A stretch of DNA of 63,730 bases, the filler included, from Sluysia triapertura (lineage: Eukaryota), in the NCBI GenBank assembly GCA_046118255.1. It is 5 parts of 5 records of this genome, joined end to end, with 100 filler letters (N's around TTAATTAATTAA, not from the genome) between each part and the next. Parts side by side here need not be neighbours in the genome. Positions count along the whole stretch, not along the records: positions 12,122 to 25,584 come from JBJNIA010038809.1; 4 more parts are not named here. The stretch is one strand, 5' to 3'. The notes under the pieces are model-generated. The model was not told the DNA's origin. It saw nothing but the letters and a program-made list of their open reading frames with translations, and searched no databases. Made by a program: the position numbers and the translations under genes. Below, in pieces: positions 12,122 through 25,584 of this stretch (positions are counted from its first letter, which is position 1; each line of letters begins with the position of its first letter).

Positions 12122-13727
12122 AGATTTTGTGGCCTGAAGTTTTATAATTTATGAATTATGTCGAGTACAATGAATTAATAATGTGTAACATTCATTTGAT
12201 GTTATATAATTGCTGGTAAATTTAACGGTTAATAATTTAAATATATTTAAATGTATTGCGTAAGTTGAAGTATTGATATGTAGAATTATGAGTTATGTGA
12301 ATTTATGTATGAGAACGACAATGAGATTATAGTGCTTTATACATTATTTTTATTCTTTTTCTTTTATTCAATAAAAATCTTGTTTAATCAGTTAATTTGT
12401 TCATTGCTGATTTTTCTAAATTAATTAAAATTTTAAAATACGTAAACATAAGTTCCATTAAGTTAATAGTCCAAATTTCTAAGCAAATATGTTGGATTAA
12501 TGTTAAATTAATTGTTAACGTTATTTTTTCATATCTTTCTTCTTTTATCTTGATTCTAATATTTTATATGCTTATATTGTTATTACAATTCATCAGTGAT
12601 GTTCATTTTATTCTAATATCTTGATTCATAACCCTATCTTTCTCGTTTTCCTTAACCAATCCCAACAATAAAGATTTGAATAACTACATGCATTGAACAT
12701 TGAATTTTATTATTTACATAAAAATATTATTTTAAAAATATTATTAAAAAATCATTACGGTACATGCTATTTTATTACTATTTACATCAAATTTTATTTT
12801 CCACTTTAATTACTATAAATAATTTATTCATATCATACAATTTTTTATTAAATAACATTTGTTTTACTCAAAATTTTCAATTTTTCATTATTACGCCATA
12901 TCTTCATAACCTTACCACAATAAAAATTTATATCCCTGTATCATTACCTTCAAATCGATATGCAATTTTTATAAATTAAAATTTGGCACGCAATAGGTTA
13001 AAAAAAACTTTAAATAATAGTTAAAAGATATAATATTACCAAGTAAATCTGTTTCATTTGAGAAACCACTTAAAATTTGGTGTAAACAATTTCTACTTTT
13101 GACGATACACATTTTTGGAACTGCTTCAAACTTTTAACATCATTATATTGTATACAATAAGTGCAATTAATCATAATTAACTTGATTATAGTCTTTACTA
13201 TTTAAAATTTGATTCTTTCAATTTGATAATATAAAATAGATCTCAATATTTCCAAGTTTCACATTAAATTAATCTTGATAAAATTAAAAGTAGAATAATG
13301 GTATGAATTATATTTTTACAGTTATTTATTTTATTATGTAAAAAATTAAATATAAAGATTATTGTATTTTGTTTTACTAATTTATCAAATATCACAACTT
13401 TTAAAATTGAGGCTCCCAATTTCAAAAATTATACATATCAAAAAAAGGTACAAAAATTAAATTTTTTTGTAAAATTAGAATTACTATAGGTATTTATTGT
13501 ATAACTGGCAAAATATTTCAATTTTTTTAAAGTATATTGGTAAATTTAGGTAAGTATTGATTAAGCTTATTGTGAGCTTTTGTCATTTTTTCAGTAAACC
13601 AATCAAATCACTTTAATCTACTTAGTTGTAGTATTATATATTAGACTGCATTCAATAGAAATTTCAGTTTAAAAAATTAAGCTACGCGAAATAAATTTAA
13701 TAGAAATTCTGTATTTTTTCGAAATTA

Positions 13728-16700
13728 ATGACAATTATTGTATTTTTAATAGACAATAGTTTGTCTATGTGTCAACGAACTTATGTAGGGACGTCTCTAC
13801 TAGATATTGCTAAAGGATGTGTTGAAGATATTTTTAAAGTATTAATATAAAGATAATTATTAATTATAAAATTTTTAGATACGTTTGAAGTTTTCTCGTT
13901 CTGATAGATATTACATTTTTAGTTTAGATAAAGATTCAAGTGGTATGAAGGTAATTGATTTATTTCAAAAATTTTAATTACTACTATTTAGTTAACTGAA
14001 TGTAAACAGAATCTTTACACAATACGAACCGCTTTAAATAACATTAAGCCTAGCAGTTATACATCATTAGGAGTTGGAGTTAGACGTACATTTGATATGT
14101 TAAACTTAATGCGTATGAGTAATGGGTTAGAAAATTACGGATTAGGGCGTTATCCAAGTCAAATAGAACATGCTATTGTTGTTTGTATAACTGATGGTGA
14201 AAATGCAACTTCTGAAATGGGTTCTTTTAAAGGAAATGTTGCATTACCAGTCTTAGATAGTAATGCACCTGGTTGTGATTATACAAACGAACCTTTTCGT
14301 TGGGATTATCGTTTCTATAGTATTGTTTTACGAATACCTGCATTTCCAAATATGAAACTAGAACAATCAAAATTTATTCCAACAGATGAAAATTGCTCTA
14401 TTCGTGAAATGTGTGAAGTAACTGGCGGTAGAGCTTATAAAATAACAAACGAAAGAATGTTGCATCAATGTTTAGAATCATTATCTCAGAAATGTCAACC
14501 AGGAGTTGTGTTACATTTTCGTAAATTAGAAGAAAGTTTGTTTTTAAATATCAGAGTTTATTTTGTTTATTTCAGATGCAGAACCAAATCCGAATCCTCC
14601 ACCATGGCACAATTGTAAAAAAATGATATATGTCAAATCTTCGAGTTTGGGTACAGTTAATTCACACTGGCCTATTCCAGAACCGTATTGGTTGGATGAA
14701 AATACAAACGAGGGCTTGGTTTGTTCGTTATAATCAAATAAATTTTTAATTTCTTTAGCAACCTCGAACTGCTCATCCGCTTGTTTGTTTTTCGACACAA
14801 AGAATGGTAGTTCCAAAAATCATGGAGCATTTTCCGGTTGATCGATACGAATTGGAGCCTTCTCCATTGACGCAGTATATGTTAGAGAAACATGACAATA
14901 GTTTCGTATGGCATTGTTATGTTCCGAAGAGTGGGAAAATCCAGGATTATCCTTTTGGTTATTTACGAGCCAGTCTAGATTTACAGTCAGTTCATTTATA
15001 TGTTTTGTCGTACAATTTTATTAGTCTGCTTGAACTGCTGCAGCAGGCGCTAGAACCAAATAAAATTCGAACTCATAATGATAATTGGGGTAGTAAATTT
15101 GCTCATTTTCTTGCAATTCTTCCCAAATACTATTTTGGACCTCTTGAGCGTGCCATGCAAAGATTGGCCTTAGGAAACATAATCAAAGCCGAATCAGTGG
15201 ATCGAGTATTGTCTTATACAATAAAATCGCATCTACAAAAATTAAGACAAAATGCCAAAATAATTTTGGATAAAGATCAGAAAGAATACAATATTAAACA
15301 AGCAGTTTTAAAACTTACTAAGAAAAGCATTTTGAAGCGGAAATTGGTCGTGGGAATAACAGATGAAGTTGGGATGGTGCCATTGGCCGGAGGTAAAATC
15401 GCACGACTCGAAGCGAGCAGTTACTTGATGTCGACTGTGGATCGCAGATTGATGAGAACGATGGCAACGCGATCAGTTAAGAATTATCGCGGTTGTGTGC
15501 ATGGAGACATTGGTACCAAACGTATCATGGAGCGTGAAAGGTTGCATGAGCAGCCTATGGCCGAGATGGGCGATTATGCAAATTACAAATTCGATAAGAT
15601 GCCAGAACCTCTGCGGGAGTTAATGCCGGCCCCAGAACGAAAAGAAACGTTCGGTAATCCATTCAGAAGAAAAACATCGAGTAGTAATAGTTCGGCTGTA
15701 AACGGTAACAACGGACTGGTACTAAATACACTAAATGGAGGAGGAATGAATGGAACCAATCCTGGAAATGGAAGTTCCTCATCAATCTCTCATGGTCTCA
15801 GTGGGTTTGAAGCTGATGAACGTTTTGTTGAAGACATGTTGACTGGTGGCGGCAGTCCTTTACATTCCAAGCGACCTTCGAGTCCATTATCACCGAGCAT
15901 AGGCAGGTCTAAGGGTTAGTTTAGACGTCTATTTCCACGTGATATCAAGAAACTATAATATGCGTTTTAAAAGAAACCCTTTGCTCTTATTAAAATTTTG
16001 AATAAGACCCAAAAATGGTCTCGTATAAACACCGATTAAAATTTTGAAGGATTTTTGTTTTACGAATGGCGGAAGTTTATATTATTGCTTCTAAAAGATT
16101 GGGTTGGAAAATGAATTTCATTGTGTGAATATGATCGTTATGCGATAACTTTATTTAGGCCGCTTACCGCTGAATATAACGTTTTACAACTGGCGAAAGA
16201 CTCCGACAAATTCTCCGTCAAGTAGTGCCGCTTCTACTCCCAATCCGACAGATTCGTATTTTAGTGAAACTAATTCGATCAGTCAGTTATTTAACAATAC
16301 AGATGACGACAGTTTCATTGCGAAAGACTCTCAAGTTTCACACGATCTTAGTGCAGTAGAAACCAATAGCAAGTCTGTCACATGTGCATCTGACTCCACT
16401 CTCTATATTCAATCGCCGAATTCACCTAGCAGCCCTAAAATTAGTGATTTGTCTGCAAATAAACAGTGGTATCACCACAACAGAATGCTCATGAAGAAAT
16501 TAATTACCATATTTAGACATCCAAAAATCGGTTAGTTATTGCGAAATCATTATTCACTTTAAAATTAAAATTATAATGAAATTGAAAATTAATATTCAAT
16601 GTTAAATTTCGATCAATAATTTAACCATGTGCAAGCTTGCAAGCTTTTATCAATTTCGTAGTATGTAATCTTAAAAATACTTGAAATAAAAAATTTAAAT

Positions 16701-17075
16701 TATTAAATTTAAAATTTCAGATATCGAAAACTGTAAAATAAATATTCCATTTAAATTTATATTTTCAATTCAGATGGTGAACAAGTATTTCAGTTATTAG
16801 TGAATTTCAAGGGTACTCATAAATTTCAAAGGATAATGATAAGTGCTAGCCTTCAGACCTGTATGCAATTTAAACGTTTCGAGATAACAAAATTAGTTCA
16901 ACAGTACTTGGAATATCTAAAACAACAAGAATTAATTCAGTTGAATGGCGGGAAAATAAGTGTGGAGAATGGTGAAAATGCGAACCACAAACTTGACGAT
17001 TTAAGAATTTGTCGCGATAATAATCGCCAAACACAAAATCCCAAATTAATGAATGGTCACGTCAATTATGTATAA
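13728..17075 (+). CDS. INTS6: Integrator complex subunit 6 (VWA domain, C-terminal INTS6/DDX26B domain), about 898 aa
   Basis: Exons 13728-13838, 13879-13950, 13992-14520, 14576-14718, 14759-15914, 16159-16530, (16721-16732), 16774-17075. All GT-AG and phase-consistent, total 2697 nt. Motifs: MTIIVFLIDNSLSM...LDIAKGCVE, ENYGLGRYP, ITDG, EPFRWDYR, MCEVTGGR, HWPIPEPYW, PRTAHP, FPVDRYELEPSPLTQY, PFGYLRAS, MGDY, FGNPF. Confidence 0.95.
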
Positions 17076-17257
17076 GTAAAAAATAAGTTGAGCGGGTTTC
17101 ATGTCTTTCACCCTTATATTAAACTCAGTCTATTGATGTTCGCATTTTATAAGAATAAATATAATAATTGATACTACTTTAGTTTTAAATTTTAAAAATT
17201 AATAAACACCGCACGTTTATATTTATAGTACACAAATACATGAGAATACAAATAATA

Positions 17258-20200
17258 TCAATTTCGTTTTCGTTTGCCCTGTATTTGACTTATTGGTGCC
17301 AATTTAACGAGATCAGCATACAAGGGTTTGTTTCCAATATAACTTTTTCGAACACTTTCCACAAAATTTTGAATTTGAACAGGGGTTATACTGCTTTTTG
17401 CGACAATAAATGCACTCCTGAATAAAACCAAAAAATTAAAGAATACAATAAATTACTTGCTGCCAGTATTTGTCTCCATCAGTTCTGCCTGATGAACGAA
17501 ACTGGGATTTAAATCGTAAATATCATTCAATTGTGCTGATTGATCGATATTGTATACAAACACTGTATTTGTGTCGATTAAAAGCTGAAAATATTCAAAA
17601 CCAAATTCAATAATTTAATCATAAATTGAGAATCAAAAATTAATACATTTTTAAATGAATATTTTAAACCTTTTATTAATTTTATTATATAATGTAGTCC
17701 AGAAAGTGTAGTCGCGAAATATTATTTTTATTAATTATTAATATTAATTAATATTTATAAATAAAATATACTTCTTATTTGAATCAAATTTGTTTTAGTA
17801 ATTGATTTCATGTTGTAGAAGTCAATAGAACAAAAGTGGATATATATACCTCAATAGTTATCAAAACCGTTTTATAACGATTAGTTTATTGTTTACAAAA
17901 ATTACTTAAGACAAATTTTCTGCTCTGCAGGGTTAAATATGTATACAATTGAAAAGATGTCACTTTAGATTTTAAGATAAAATTTAATTATTTTTCTGAT
18001 TAAATAGAAAATTTTATTCAGTCTTTCATTTAAAATAGATAAAAGGATCCTCATTAATTTTAAAATTAAACAAAAAATAATGCTCTGAAAATTTATTGTG
18101 CATTTTATTTGAAAATTAAATTTTTTAACTTTGCCTTTGTTAAGTCTTAAAATGATAACTCAAGAAGTTAATTATATTTACATAAATTTATCTATAATGT
18201 TCAACTGCCATATTTAATTATAAAATAAAATATCTGGTGTAAAAGTAACTCTACAAAGAAATAATCTTCACAAAATCTAATGAATTTCTGATTACTTGAT
18301 TACGTATCAAGTTTAGCTATTACGATTAAAATTAATGATCTATCTTAATGCATATACAAGACATTTTTATGATATGCAACTAAGTGAGGCGATTGAAGTT
18401 GTCCAATTTCAAATTTATTTTATATTATATTATATAACACAACTAGAACTACACTTGATTAAGCGAATTAAAATGGTCGAATACTAGTATGCAGAAAAAG
18501 CATAAGAATGATAAGAATTTTTATTTATGAATTAAAATTTTTGATTTTGCAAATGAAATCAAGTTTTTATAATTGCTAATATCTATTATGCTATAGGTAC
18601 TCAAAATAGTCGAGTATTTTTTGAAATAAAATAGTCGATTATGTTTTTTGAAATATCTAACATATTGTACTATCACTGCGAATTTTGCATGAATTTTTAT
18701 ATTTTAAAGACATTCTTTTCTATTATCTCTATGAAATTCAGAACTTACGTAATGAAAACATTTATAAATTATTGCCATGATTTCGAATTTAATTTAAAGT
18801 CTAAGATTATGGGAAAATAAACACCAAAATTAATATCCAATAATGTTCGAATAACAAAAAAGCAATGGATTTTTCATCACTGTAGTTTCCAAAAAAATAT
18901 TTCATATATTAGATAAAAAGAAATTTCATTGAATAAAATACAAATATACCAATCATCTTTAAGAATACTAAATTTGAATTTATCTACGACAGGTATAAAA
19001 AATCTAAAAATAACCTTAGACGAAGATTCGTTACTTGGGTTGTCTGATTGCAAGTAAACTTCACGGATAAGAACTTGCCTTCCATTGAAACTCTTTTTAG
19101 ATAAATTGCACAATACCTTCAACCACTCATCGGAAGTACAATCCGGAAAGTACATAAACGCTTTACTGAAAATTTAAATTAAACATTCATTTTTATGCAT
19201 AACTATTTTCATTTAATCTATTTACAAAATAAATGCAGCGAAAGGGTTAATTTTTCTGTAACATGCTCTCAGCTTCAAATTTCATATAATCATTTCACTG
19301 CACATGAGGAAATTTTGTATTCGATTATGCAGTTTACTTGTAAATAAATACTCACTTTACGCCTTCATTCGAAGGCAAAATGACACACCCTCCCGAACTG
19401 CGACCTGCACTTACCAACAGTACAGCGCTACCAACATTGCGCTGCAGATTGTCAACACAAATGAACTCTGTCTTCATGAGACTCATTTCATCTTCTGGTA
19501 AAGAAATCAATTTAATATTTTCAGGTCGCCAGTTGTCGACTAAGTTAGGGACACCATAATTAGAATTTCGTTTTCTGTTATTGGAAACTTGTTTAGACGA
19601 ATTATTCGCGTTCGCATATAAGCTTCCTTGATTTGACATAGAATTGTTTGACATGGCATTTAATAAAAATTGGTTTGTTATTACTGGGTTGATACTTTGT
19701 GGTTGTTGATTTATCGAAGGCTGCATTAAGTTGTTATTTGCTAGTCCTTGCAGAAGAGCTGAAAACAAACGAGTAGTTACTTCCGTATTTATGTCTGCAT
19801 TCGTATTAATTCTTCCCTCGTTAGTTGGATTTGGATTAGCATGCAAACCGAAGTTGTTCATTACAGACATAGTTACGTCTTGCATTGCGGTTGCTTCAAC
19901 AGCTCCCATCGTATTGTTCAACAAATTCATCAAATTGTTGACAACCAGTGGAGCTTGAGTGAGGACTTTCGGTCGACTGATGAATTGATATGACCTTTCT
20001 TGCTTTGGAATTCCTTTTAAACCTGGACATCGGATGTAGATCTCGTTAACTTCCAGATTGCAGCCATTAAAATTCAGTCCTCGTAAGTGTCGAATTATAA
20101 GAGAGCACGTTTCTGCGTTCATACCCCGAGGAAATATTAAAAATCCTAATCTAAATGCAATAAATATCAAACCATTTAAAATATCGAAATCTTTATTTTT

Positions 20201-22540
20201 CATATTTAAGACAATCGAAACCGGCTTTAAACAGTTTAATTGTACAAACAATAATTAATAAAATGCAAACATGTTTTTATTTAGGAAAATAAAACTAACT
20301 GAGTATCCATTTCATTAACTGTAAAAAGACTAAGTTTCAAATTATTCGGAATACCGAATAATAGCTGCTGAGAAGAAATTGATGTAGGAACTCCTGCGAT
20401 ATAAAGATAATGTGTCAGAACCATCTCATCGTTTTCACCAGCTCCTTCGATTTCATTTAAATTCGGTGGTTCACATCCATCTGGTTGAAACCAAACTTCA
20501 TTAATTTTTATTTTATTGTCAAATTGCATATGTAATCTTTGATGCACGTTTGATCTCGAACTATGAGACTGGGATCGCAATTCCGTAGAAGAATTTGTCG
20601 TACTCACCGTTTGATTAACAGCTACTCCAGCTATATCTTCGTCCCAGTCTTCTTCATCTTCCGCTAGTAAATCGATGGGTTCTCCGCGAGTTTCAGTTAC
20701 GCCGCTAGTACCAGTTGAATTCTGATTAGTAGCTAAACCCCTCGATTCTGAATCCACGAAAACCATGTCTCTCAACTTTTCAAACAAGGTCATAAATCGA
20801 TTATTAGGTAATGACTTTGGAACATACATAAAGCCGAATTTTTTTCGATTCATAATTTCCAAAAAGAAAACGCGTGATCCTTTAATATTTTCTGATTTGA
20901 TGGCTTCTATTATCATTTTAACTGTAATTTTCGGTGGTATTTCGTGTACAAAAAATAAATTTGATTGATATGACTTCATTCTGAAATATTAAATATTTCT
21001 GTTTATGCCATTTTCGACTTTAGGATATATACATACAAAATTCAGGTTTAAACTTTAACTTGAAAATACTTTCATTCATAAATTATCCATACAACATACA
21101 TAAAAACAGATTTAAACCAGAGTATACATTACTTGTAACACCCCTTTTATGATTGGAAAATAAGAAATTATTGTACAAACACTAAATTAATATTGAAATG
21201 ATTAATTAATATACATAAACTGGAAAAATCAAGCAAAGTTCGTTAATTTAATGAAAATAAACCTAAATCCAAATTTCACATAACATTTTTTATTTCTTTT
21301 TTTCAATTGAAGTTTAGGTAAAATAAGGCAACAACGATCCCAGGATGATGTTAATGAAAATTGTGCCCACCATAATAAAACATATTTGAGTATATACTCA
21401 CGTTTGATTGATTTTCAACATTCTTGGAACCATGACATCTCCAAGAACGGGACTTTCACCGATAATAAGTTCTGAGACCTTGGGACAGAATCCGCGTATA
21501 TACCGACTGCGCAATGTTCCCAAAATAAAGCTTCTCATAGGAAACGTACAGCTTAACGGTAGCTTGATTAATAAGCATCTGAAAATATATTTTGGGTCAA
21601 AATTATGCAATAAAATTTAAATCAAAACAATATATTATATTTATAAATTGAATTTAGCATATTTTTACATCATGCCATGTTTAACTATGGAAATGTATAA
21701 CGATGTGAATACGAAGATTATACATGTATCTATCAAAAAACAGTTAAAAATGACAATTTTTTGAATGAATGAATAAACTCTGTTAAAATTTTAATCGATA
21801 ATCATTGGTCATTTTATTTATCTAATTTTAAATTTCACAAAATCTAATTTTCTTTTTTTTTCAAAAGATAATTCAATGCTTTCGATAAGTTTGTACTGTA
21901 ACTTGTATAATTAAAATTGAAAAATATTCAATTCAACTTGTAATTTCATTTTTAATTTTTCGAATAATTAATTTCAAACTATTAATTAATTTGACAATTT
22001 TGATACGAAATTTTAATTCAACTACCACAGCTGTTCTCGTTCGCAGTAGTAGTAAGTCAGATGGTGCGGAACCACGAAATACTTGAACATTTAAAAATCA
22101 ATCTTTTAGATGTAAGCATTAAATTAAACTTAAAATGCCTTTACTTTTAAATGTTTTTCTTCGACATTTTAAATTAAATCATTACATTAAAATACATCAA
22201 AAAGATGACGTAAGAATTATTTACATGTTTTAAAGATGAATAGTTAAATTTTTCTGAAAGGGAACACTTACAACCTCAGCTAATACTTAAATTAGAATTT
22301 AACACAACCTTAACTTTTAAAAGTACATATTTCATTCGAAAGTAAAAATCTCAGATGATTAGTAATGTTAAAAACTAGAAAAATATATTTAAATATAGAT
22401 AAAGTAATAAAATTGAATAATTTTCAAATCCATATAAAAATAAAATTATAAATACAAATATTTTATAATTATATATTTCAATAAAATTATAACAGACTTT
22501 ATATTTAATCATATATTTTATATAAATATATTGGTAATGC

Positions 22541-22601
<61 letters not shown>

Positions 22602-24210
22602 TAAATAATAAAAATAAAATATAAAATTATAATCAAAAATGCATAAATATATCAAACTCATTTTTATAAAATAAGTCAAAAACGTCGATTACTAAAATTA
22701 AAAAATGGTACAGAACATCGCTGAAAAAACTAATAAGACCAAAATAAATAAAGTTCTGGAAAATATATGAATTTTATAGGACATACTAAATATACATTTT
22801 TGAATATAATTACAATTTGAAATCTGATTAAAGCACGAATTACATTTATTTTGTTTTCTTTCCACAATCTACAGAAAAATATTCGAGCAGTGATTTAAAG
22901 AAATATTCCGATTCAATATGAATAAATGGTCCGAAATTAAAAGTACTTTTTATAAATTTAAGTCATGTTCAAAAATTTCACACCTTTTTAACAATTCCCT
23001 TTAAAAATAATGAACAAATTCAATATGGGGCTTTTGTTAGACTGACACCGAGTAAAACAAATTGACTTTACCGAATTCATTGAACTAAATTGTCGATTAC
23101 ACTTTGAATGTAAAACTATCAGTTTAATATACTTCTTAAATCAAAAATTGTTTATATTTTGGCGACAACGAACCATCAAAATCCTAATGAATTACCATAA
23201 TTAAAACTGATCCAATAATATTGAGAAAACATTAAAACAGTAACCACAATTAATTTTGATATTGCGTAAAATTTTCGTTGTATAAGAATTAATATATTTA
23301 GAAAAGTGAGTTGTACTTGTGCAAGACGCAAATAATGCGATCATAACCAAATTGAATACTAATTTACTGAAAAAATTGAAATTAGAAACTTCTCAGTACA
23401 TAATAGGCTCATAAATACAAAATTTGCATTCTTATAAGATTTCATAAATGTTGAAACATTCTATATCAACTATTAAAGACTCACAATCATAAAAATATCG
23501 ACTGCTTTAAATTCTATGCTCAAGTAAGAATAAAATTATTTTTTAATTCGTGCTTTTCAGACTAATTTAATAATAATGATAATAATAATAAATATACGAT
23601 ATATAAGCAATACTTGTCACTTCGTTCAGCGATATCCCACTGCTTTAGGTCAGTTGCTTGTAACGGTAAGTCAGCAATTATTTCAGGTGGTAAAGCTTCC
23701 TTGTGTAAATTTTCCAATAAAATATAGGGTAACATAGACGCTCCATCTGGAATCTGTCGAAACAAACACGAAGAACTCGGTATAAATATAGTTATAATGA
23801 TAATAGGATTGAGAAATGCATATTTGATAATTAAAGTATATATAAATGAAAAACTATAAATAATAAAAATATTTCATTTTTTTAAATAATCGTATTTTAA
23901 TGTCAAAAGTATTTATATTAAGGTACGACAATCTTACCATAGTTGTTAAAAATACATCTGGAGGAGGAAAAAATACATATTGCACTATAAGATTATTGCT
24001 TCCGTCAGCTTCACGTGCTCGCAATCGTTCCACACCTTTAACTGTCTCATTGTGGTGCTTAACAGGATTGTATACTAATGCATCTCTTAAACCACTAAAG
24101 GAATTTTCCAAATATAACATTCGAGCCCATTTATTATGAAATTCATGCAAAAACAACACTGGTTTAGTGTTACTTGGTATATTCGATAAATAAACGTAAG
24201 GAGTATTCAT
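17258..24210 (-). CDS. Uncharacterised 834-aa protein with six divergent RRM-like repeats and an N/Q/M-rich linker
   Basis: Exons (minus) 24210-23938, 23753-23614, 21578-21402, 20980-20300, 20150-19356, 19165-19015, 17584-17457, 17417-17258. All GT-AG and phase-consistent, total 2505 nt ending in TGA. RNP2-like starts: YVYLSNIP, YILLENLH, LFFVHEIP, YLYIAGVP, FICVDNLQ, VFVYNID. RNP1-like segments: KKFGFMYV, QLGFLIF, NKAFMYF, KSAFIVA. Basic C-terminus GKRKRN. Confidence 0.85.
22541..22600. repeat. (AAT)n microsatellite in intron 2 of the RRM-like gene
   Basis: About 19 tandem AAT units. Confidence 0.95.
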
Positions 24211-25424
24211 CAAAAATTAATTTTATATATAATTTATTTTAAACTTTAATTTAATCACATTAATCAAAAACCAGTCAAAAAATTGAAACATAATTGTTAG
24301 ATTCAATCATCTTCAAAATATCAAAATATTTATAATCTATATGGCAAAATTTATATTGTTTTATTTCTCTTTTTAATATTTATAAACATTTAAAAGAACT
24401 AATTAAAACAAGTTTATTAATAATCAAAATAGAAAATTTTATATATTTATATAGGTAGTACACTTGGTTTATCTAAACATTTATACCTAATCAAATCAAA
24501 CTTATAAAGATTAAGTTTTATTGTAAATATTAAGTTATAAAGATAAAGTTAATAAAAATTGTCATTTTATTGTCATATTACATAACTGATGCATTTGATA
24601 TTTTCCATGCATTAAATATTGAACATTTTACGGAAGATTTTATCTTTTAATTATCAGTAACACAATAGGTATAAAATAATATATTAATTTGGGTTTATTT
24701 TACTTTTATGAATCATAATTGTAATCAAACTATAATTGTTCACTAATATAATGGTGATGTAGTAGTGATAATTATTATAAATATAAATTACATAATATGT
24801 ATCTTAACTGCAATCAGATTTATGTGATATTTTATAGTTTGTAAAAATTTATTAATTTACCAATTTATTAGACTAAAAATGAATAATTTAAGTACCGATC
24901 ATCATTAAAACTTTATAAAACATTAACAACTTACAAATTATTTTTGTAAAATGCTGTCAAAATAAAATGTGCATATAATTATCAAGTATGTTTGAATATT
25001 GTTTTTATTTATCAAATGAAATTATTCACATTTGCGACAATAAAAAGCATTTATTCTTCTCTCACGATCAAAAGTCAAATATAAAATTTCTATAAAAAAA
25101 GGCTGTTACATCGCAAAAAAGTGATGTATAATGAACTATCTATCGTAAATCAACCTCCAAGACAAGCAATTATTTAAGTCAATCCCTCCATGAGTTTATA
25201 ATCATTCACTCAAATTGGTATCGATTCACAACCACAAATACCACTACATGAAATGAGAACTCATCATCATTGCGAACATTTATGATGTGGTTTTACTTCA
25301 AAAGGCTAAATTCTCAAAATTAATGAGTTTAATAAAAGACAAACTTTAACTACAAGAACTTGTGGAGGTCATTAATGCTAATCGATACTAAATATTGATT
25401 TAATTTGAGTTTGTTGGCTCGTTA

Positions 25425-25584
25425 TAATAATAATAATATATTAATTTATATTGCGCGCATATCTACCGCGAAAGTACTCAAAAGCGCTTATGGTATATCA
25501 TTCACCGTAGTATTTCTGAAACAGAAAGAACTTTGCTTTTTTCTTAAATATTTCATAATCTTCTAGCAATTTGACATTATCTGG
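25425..25584 (-). mobile_element. 3' end of an L2/CR1-group LINE, truncated by end of piece B
   Basis: Minus strand reads PDNVKLLEDYEIFKKKAKFFLFQKYYGE* (stop 25500-25498), like the LP..IR....FK..LKT.LF end of ORF2. A short 3' UTR with AGCGC...GCGCAATATAAAT and an (ATT)n tail follows. Confidence 0.65.

Follow-up and report, generated by a model that had tools for sequence, protein, structure and literature searches.

An eight-exon gene of Sluysia triapertura probably encodes an orphan protein of six divergent RRM-like modules

Do the scattered open reading frames (ORFs) on one strand of a Sluysia triapertura locus conceal a single spliced gene and, if so, what kind of protein would it encode? 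The locus lies within a 63,730-nt stretch of assembly GCA_046118255.1 (hereafter the window), in which five parts of five records are joined end to end with 100 filler letters between each part and the next; the part of interest, positions 12,122 to 25,584, comes from JBJNIA010038809.1. The surrounding DNA is AT-rich and eukaryotic, and a mechanical list of minus-strand ORFs gives disconnected fragments only. An initial annotation, made from the sequence, had proposed that these fragments hide eight exons encoding six highly divergent repeats that resemble the RNA recognition motif (RRM). Our analysis bears out the hidden reading frame and makes it rather probable that the locus is a gene for a modular protein with six RRM-type folds, whose modules derive from one ancestral, intron-containing RRM-like unit.

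Splicing by script joined the eight exons in phase along the minus strand from 24210 to 17258, yielding 2505 nt that comprise 834 codons followed by TGA, with no internal stops. The start ATG lies at 24210, and an in-frame TAA is found 9 nt upstream of it. All seven introns have GT..AG ends and T-rich acceptors (..ttcag or ..tttag, mostly ..ttcag); introns 2, 3, 4, 5 and 7 are of phase 2, and introns 1 and 6 of phase 0. Base composition provides a signal that is independent of the reading frame, as GC content is 34-41% in exons, 18-26% in introns and 22-24% in the flanks. The repeats (R1 to R6), with their motifs resembling the RRM ribonucleoprotein motifs RNP1 and RNP2, are laid out over the exons as follows:

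17258..24210, minus strand: whole coding region, eight exons, from the splice and frame check and the exon/intron GC contrast
23938..24210, minus strand: exon 1, ending in phase 0; R1 (residues 3-92), with RNP2-like VYLSNI at the extreme N-terminus
23614..23753, minus strand: exon 2, first half of R2, with RNP2-like ILLENL; ends at phase-2 intron 2 (23613-21579)
21402..21578, minus strand: exon 3, second half of R2 (beta3-alpha2-beta4); phase 2 at both ends
20300..20980, minus strand: exon 4, R3 (core 20964-20752, beta4 20517-20479) and first half of R4 (from 20415)
19356..20150, minus strand: exon 5, second half of R4 (to 20027), N/Q-rich linker (19969-19538) and first half of R5 (from 19486)
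19582-19568, minus strand: NRKRN patch inside the exon 5 linker
19015..19165, minus strand: exon 6, second half of R5 (beta3-alpha2-beta4)
17457..17584, minus strand: exon 7, first half of R6, with canonical RNP2 VFVYNI; ends at intron 7 (17456-17418; 39 nt, phase 2)
17258..17417, minus strand: exon 8, second half of R6, C-terminal GKRKRN (17278-17261) and stop

The order of modules is R1-R2-R3, an acidic insertion, R4, the N/Q-rich linker and R5-R6, a 3 + 1 + 2 grouping. Intron sizes are bimodal (39 nt for intron 7, against 2035 and 1430 nt for introns 2 and 6), and this, along with the T-rich ..ttcag acceptors, may help in placing the organism.

Relatives were sought with single exon peptides as queries in searches that covered ~15 billion proteins in all, and four fragmentary ones were found. 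Three of these came from a phmmer search of 1.84 billion representatives with exon 4: P0001, a 180-aa UniParc entry (55% identity, E 3.8e-31); P0002, 128 aa from a 1.5-kb ENA contig (43% identity, E 2.1e-13); and P0003, 108 aa from a 1.2-kb ENA contig (32% identity, E 6.6e-7). The fourth match in this search, a 2434-aa sea-urchin protein (E 3.6e-4), was taken as spurious. P0005 (119 aa, ENA) was added by a profile word search; a word-index protein search with exon 4 itself gave no match. P0001 passes unbroken from exon-3-like to exon-4-like sequence (KVNQTQDAYISNFFYLHDIP, compared to KINQTMKSYQSNLFFVHEIP in the window protein), which supports the exon 3/4 junction. P0005 matches exon 3 from end to end (58 of 58 full codons, 55% identity, E 2e-22); upstream of this match it holds pyrimidine-rich junk ending in ..FR, where read-through of the window acceptor gives ..IFR-C, and downstream it holds unrelated residues, suggesting that the borders of exon 3 are the same, or very nearly so, in the genome from which P0005 derives. 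P0002, in turn, terminates at ...LSTQ, exactly where exon 4 of the window ends (...EMDTQ), as expected from an ORF caller reading CA/GTAA through a phase-2 donor. These borders indicate that introns 2 and 4 were in place before the window protein and the relatives at 55% and 43% identity diverged, and the array (at least R2-R4) would likewise predate that divergence. The array is therefore probably an old architecture within the family and not a recent burst. A ciliate-type genetic code was set aside as unneeded, the relatives confirming the exon borders.

Taken together, the splice and frame check, the GC contrast and the fragmentary relatives support one spliced gene, as first annotated. The accompanying suggestion that the protein is lineage-specific holds in part, in that the family appears in the databases searched only as these four fragments. 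The gene model could nevertheless be only partly right: terminal exons 1, 2, 7 and 8 might belong to another transcript or be non-coding, or the locus might be a decaying pseudogene, in which case six repeats would overstate the protein. Several observations fit this alternative. External relatives cover exons 3-4 only, and exon 1 had neither a match in a word-index protein search nor a usable one in an ESM Atlas search; intron 7 is very short and introns 2 and 6 are long; and the one public sequencing run that contains the locus (X1) is not an RNA run but genomic DNA, since introns are present within its 8.5-kb contig. On the other hand, all eight exons join into one uninterrupted frame at consensus splice sites, and the exon-type rise in GC is seen in every one of them. 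The comparison of the repeats, to which we now turn, also speaks to this alternative.

The six repeat segments were taken from the spliced protein and aligned with MAFFT. The sum-of-pairs score of the six-way alignment lies 7.1 standard deviations (sd) over 200 shuffled sets, and each repeat alone scores 3.1-5.8 sd over its own shuffles, a score reached by 0 of 100 shuffles. Of 14 natural segments used as controls, cut from INTS6 and from linkers of the protein itself, none reaches the score of any repeat. Compared in pairs, the repeats are indeed highly divergent: few pairs are significant by BLASTP, the best being R4-R5, where 86 residues align at 21% identity (E 0.001 for a database of six sequences), followed by R3-R4 (E 0.05), and other pairs are not significant. 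Whole R4 aligned with the R3-family profile over 81 columns (z 7.6 against shuffles), and hhalign in 'global' mode recovered R4 only. The start of exon 5 (beta3-beta4 of R4) and exon 6 (beta3-beta4 of R5) each aligned in register with beta3-beta4 of R3 over 42 columns (hhalign E 5.7e-4 and 3.5e-3, respectively), both alignments starting at the first residues of the exon, and beta1 of R1 (TPYVYLSNIPSN) aligned with beta1 of the family's R4 over 16 columns (E 8e-4). Exon 8 was not significant against the R3 family by hhalign (E 0.17), leaving the six-way alignment tests as the support for the second half of R6. Leave-one-out hidden Markov models, which proved unstable, are less favourable: p was ~0.001 for R3 and R5, 0.04 for R1 and 0.08-0.09 for R2 and R6, while R4 failed, its omission causing the other repeats to align differently. 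Judged by these alignments, homology is clear among R3, R4 and R5 and probable for R1, R2 and R6. Prolines add a further shared feature, with one after beta3 in five of the six repeats (NPVK, LPLS, VPKS, FPRG, FPDC) and, in every repeat, another within a few residues of the end of beta4; these appear to be specific to the repeats, without counterpart in a generic RRM.

From the positions of the introns, the initial annotation had proposed that the array grew by duplication of one intron-containing module. In the MAFFT alignment, which had no intron information, the split codons K, Q, N and K of R2, R4, R5 and R6 (introns 2, 4, 5 and 7, all phase 2) share one column, 1-2 residues before the beta3-like strand, and the junctions read K-CLL, Q-LGF, N-KAF and K-SAF exactly as annotated. 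In the structural model of R3 described below, the same point corresponds to the end of the beta2-beta3 loop. It is very unlikely that four introns of equal phase and structural point arose independently, and they are most simply explained if all modules stem from a single intron-containing unit and R1 and R3 have lost the intron; the proposed duplication fits these shared positions and phases. The four introns might instead go back to an intron that the RRMs of an older family already possessed, and no such family was found. Common ancestry would account for the pre-beta3 phase-2 intron of four modules, the post-beta3 proline of five of the six and the post-beta4 proline of all six, with the intron either lost from R1 and R3 or never present there. 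Some genes with tandem RRMs, hnRNP A1 among them, have their introns at an equivalent site in every RRM. The present gene resembles this case in the equivalent intron position of its repeated modules, which is read as a footprint of duplication, and differs in that the intron is found in four of six units, in phase 2, immediately before beta3 and in an orphan family.

These results also count against a partly wrong gene model, as R1, R2 and R6 align to the other repeats above all shuffles and natural controls, and the intron of R6 shares its column and phase with those of R2, R4 and R5, which chance picking of exons would not give. We consider it improbable that the terminal exons are misassigned or the gene decaying, and retain the eight-exon model with six repeats.

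What fold do the repeats adopt? AlphaFold2 was applied to P0001 with a four-row alignment (A1), giving a confident core limited to the R3 region: residues 54-134 of the model (predicted local distance difference test, pLDDT, ~70-81) run strand-helix-strand-strand-helix-strand, the beta1-alpha1-beta2-beta3-alpha2-beta4 order of an RRM. Foldseek comparison to the PDB returned mostly RRMs in its top rows, including TIAR, UPF3B, CFIm68, RBM23, TIA-1, nucleolin and PTBP1 (E ~2e-3 to 1e-2), and RRMs made up the great majority of top structural rows both in the Foldseek-seeded and in an unbiased search. An ESM Atlas feature search with exon 4 gave RRM clusters only, at 0.86, which is lead level. The predicted fold of R3, taken alone, is ferredoxin-like and most like an RRM; an RNP2-like FFVHEI on beta1 and an RNP1-like KKFGFMYV on beta3 tip it towards an RRM. 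The modules could in principle be generic ferredoxin-like alpha/beta units, such as ACT-like or acylphosphatase-like domains, with no kinship to RRMs and no link to RNA. This is quite improbable, given the great majority of RRMs in both structural searches, the presence at RRM positions of RNP2-like x-[FYL]-[ILV]-x-N-[LI] on beta1 and RNP1-like K-x-F-G-F-x-Y-V on beta3, and an arrangement in tandem arrays with linkers that is typical of RRM proteins. The six RRM-like repeats of the initial annotation thus find support in the pattern shared by all six, in the RRM-type model of R3 and in the homology of R4 and R5 to R3, but not in a single-sequence AlphaFold2 model of exon 1, which at pLDDT 42 is uninformative for R1; for R1, R2 and R6 we infer an RRM-type fold.

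The canonical RNP aromatics, as originally described, are partly lost. R3 keeps all three classic aromatics, with the G-F of RNP1 invariant in the relatives, and the other repeats fall short of one or more: R6 combines a canonical RNP2 with a weak RNP1 (KSAFIVA), and in R1, R2 and R5 the N-[LI] of RNP2 is retained but aromatics of RNP1 are lost. Several repeats carry aliphatic residues at the aromatic positions (for example, RDALVYN and KCLLIKL).

To which family, then, would such a protein belong? Pfam searches with the eight exon peptides (in which R1 and R3 are complete and the intron-split repeats are present as halves) and with P0001-P0003 gave no RRM family at E<=10. Exon 4, A1 and those halves of R4, R5 and R6 that span beta3-beta4 were compared to the PDB by sequence and by profile, with spurious matches only (E ~0.4-3), and A1 found no locus in the JGI metagenomes. 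Compared to the RRM superfamily (Pfam clan RRM, e.g. PF00076), the protein is alike in the predicted fold and RNP-like motifs of R3 and in its tandem modules of ~80 residues with low-complexity linkers between them; it is unlike in its lack of a Pfam match, in the missing RNP aromatics of most repeats, in the prolines after beta3 and beta4 and in a ~75-residue insertion between alpha2 and beta4 of R3. By predicted fold and motifs it would belong to the RRM world, and by sequence to no curated family.

Another explanation would be that the gene is the orthologue of some known multi-RRM factor (of the RBM19/MRD1, PTB/hnRNP-L, RBM12 or hnRNP-H type) and has evolved very fast; its pre-beta3 introns would then come from the ancestor of that family and not from duplication within the gene. 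RBM19 (Mrd1, or RBD-1 in C. elegans), a six-RRM nucleolar factor of pre-rRNA processing, comes closest in architecture, with six RRM-type modules, the first at the extreme N-terminus, and a similar overall size. However, its RRMs are canonical where those of the window protein are degenerate, and its module grouping and linkers appear to differ; a 3 + 1 + 2 spacing with the first RRM at residue 3 likewise seems unlike that of RBM19 or PTB. The phmmer search with exon 4 (R3 and half of R4) over the 1.84 billion representatives gave the three fragments and no named RRM protein, RBM19-like proteins included, and there was no Pfam RRM_1 match. PTB and hnRNP L, whose motifs have aliphatic residues in place of RNP aromatics much as in several repeats here (a lead only), have four domains instead of six; no PTB-type Pfam family was matched at E<=10, the exon 4 and A1 searches gave no sequence match, and structural rows for hnRNP L and nPTB were tied with all other RRMs. 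For the qRRM signature of RBM12 and hnRNP H/F there was no Pfam match, and Atlas feature leads, at 0.83, were under the usable level. The initial annotation had been unable to match the protein to RBM19, PTB, hnRNP-L or RBM12, and our searches found no relative among them by sequence. Together with the shared post-beta3 and post-beta4 prolines, which point to duplication within this family, these findings make orthology to a known factor unlikely, and we continue to favour a separate family of six RRM-type modules.

The insertion in R3 sets the window protein apart from its relatives:

20518..20751, minus strand: acidic/Ser-rich insertion of ~75 residues in the alpha2-beta4 loop of R3 (alignment A1, columns 141-213)

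It is absent from all three relatives in that alignment (P0001-P0003). An unspliced intron was considered as its source and rejected, as no in-phase GT..AG pair removes all of it and exon 4, insertion included, has an exon-like GC content of 0.35. An in-frame 39-nt stretch (GTGAGT...CAG, 20607-20569, minus strand) within exon 4 has the same length as intron 7, and splicing it out would remove 13 residues (VSTTNSSTELRSQ) of this lineage-specific insertion. The stretch is ~46% GC by our count, compared to 18-26% in the real introns; it is probably exonic, and could be an alternative intron.

Other features of the locus lie outside the coding exons. Within the 2-kb intron 2 there is an (AAT)n microsatellite of ~32 copies (22541-22633), at which the contigs of the public DNA run break. 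The window and this run differ at three single bases (21123, 22207 and 22210), all of them intronic, which could reflect errors in assembly or variation between strains or alleles. No match was obtained when the piece was scanned for Rfam families and tRNAs. The neighbouring gene, a homologue of Integrator subunit 6 (INTS6) at 14097-15919 on the plus strand, converges with the RRM-like gene tail to tail. Its 371-aa ORF matches the INTS6 beta-barrel domain PF25462 (E 1.7e-27), and a 173-aa ORF upstream looks like the end of the INTS6 VWA domain; the two ORFs imply at least one intron near 14600-14800.

On the reading that we favour, an expressed-type protein-coding gene would encode six ferredoxin-like beta-alpha-beta-beta-alpha-beta modules, all of them arising from one ancestral intron-containing RRM-like unit. 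The protein would bind RNA or other proteins, to judge from its sequence, and basic KRKR patches that resemble nuclear localization signals (the C-terminal GKRKRN and the internal NRKRN) suggest a nuclear location. R3 would be the most likely module to contact RNA, because it keeps all three RNP aromatics, and the other modules, having lost one or more aromatics as in PTB-type or pseudo-RRMs, would probably be weaker RNA binders or protein-docking surfaces. By analogy with PTB, hnRNP L and pseudo-RRMs, it is plausible that some modules serve in protein binding or in atypical RNA binding. A more specific version is doubtful, though possible: a rapidly evolving, lineage-restricted family of six-module pseudo-RRM scaffolds, in which R3 alone reads RNA and the other five modules have become surfaces for docking proteins. 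Such a family would have grown as an RRM unit of two exons was duplicated again and again, its phase-2 intron persisting in four modules.

These findings point to no new kind of mechanism, as arrays of several RRMs, degenerate copies of the domain and duplication of its exons are all well known, and a specialist in RNA binding would not be much surprised. Their value lies mainly in the annotation of a poorly sampled lineage, where a modular protein of considerable size can escape both an ordinary ORF track and scans for known families. The protein would add an orphan branch to the RRM-fold world, with four fragmentary relatives among ~15 billion proteins, and, because four of its introns share position and phase, it would offer a clean and testable example of how a domain array may grow by duplication of an intron-containing module.

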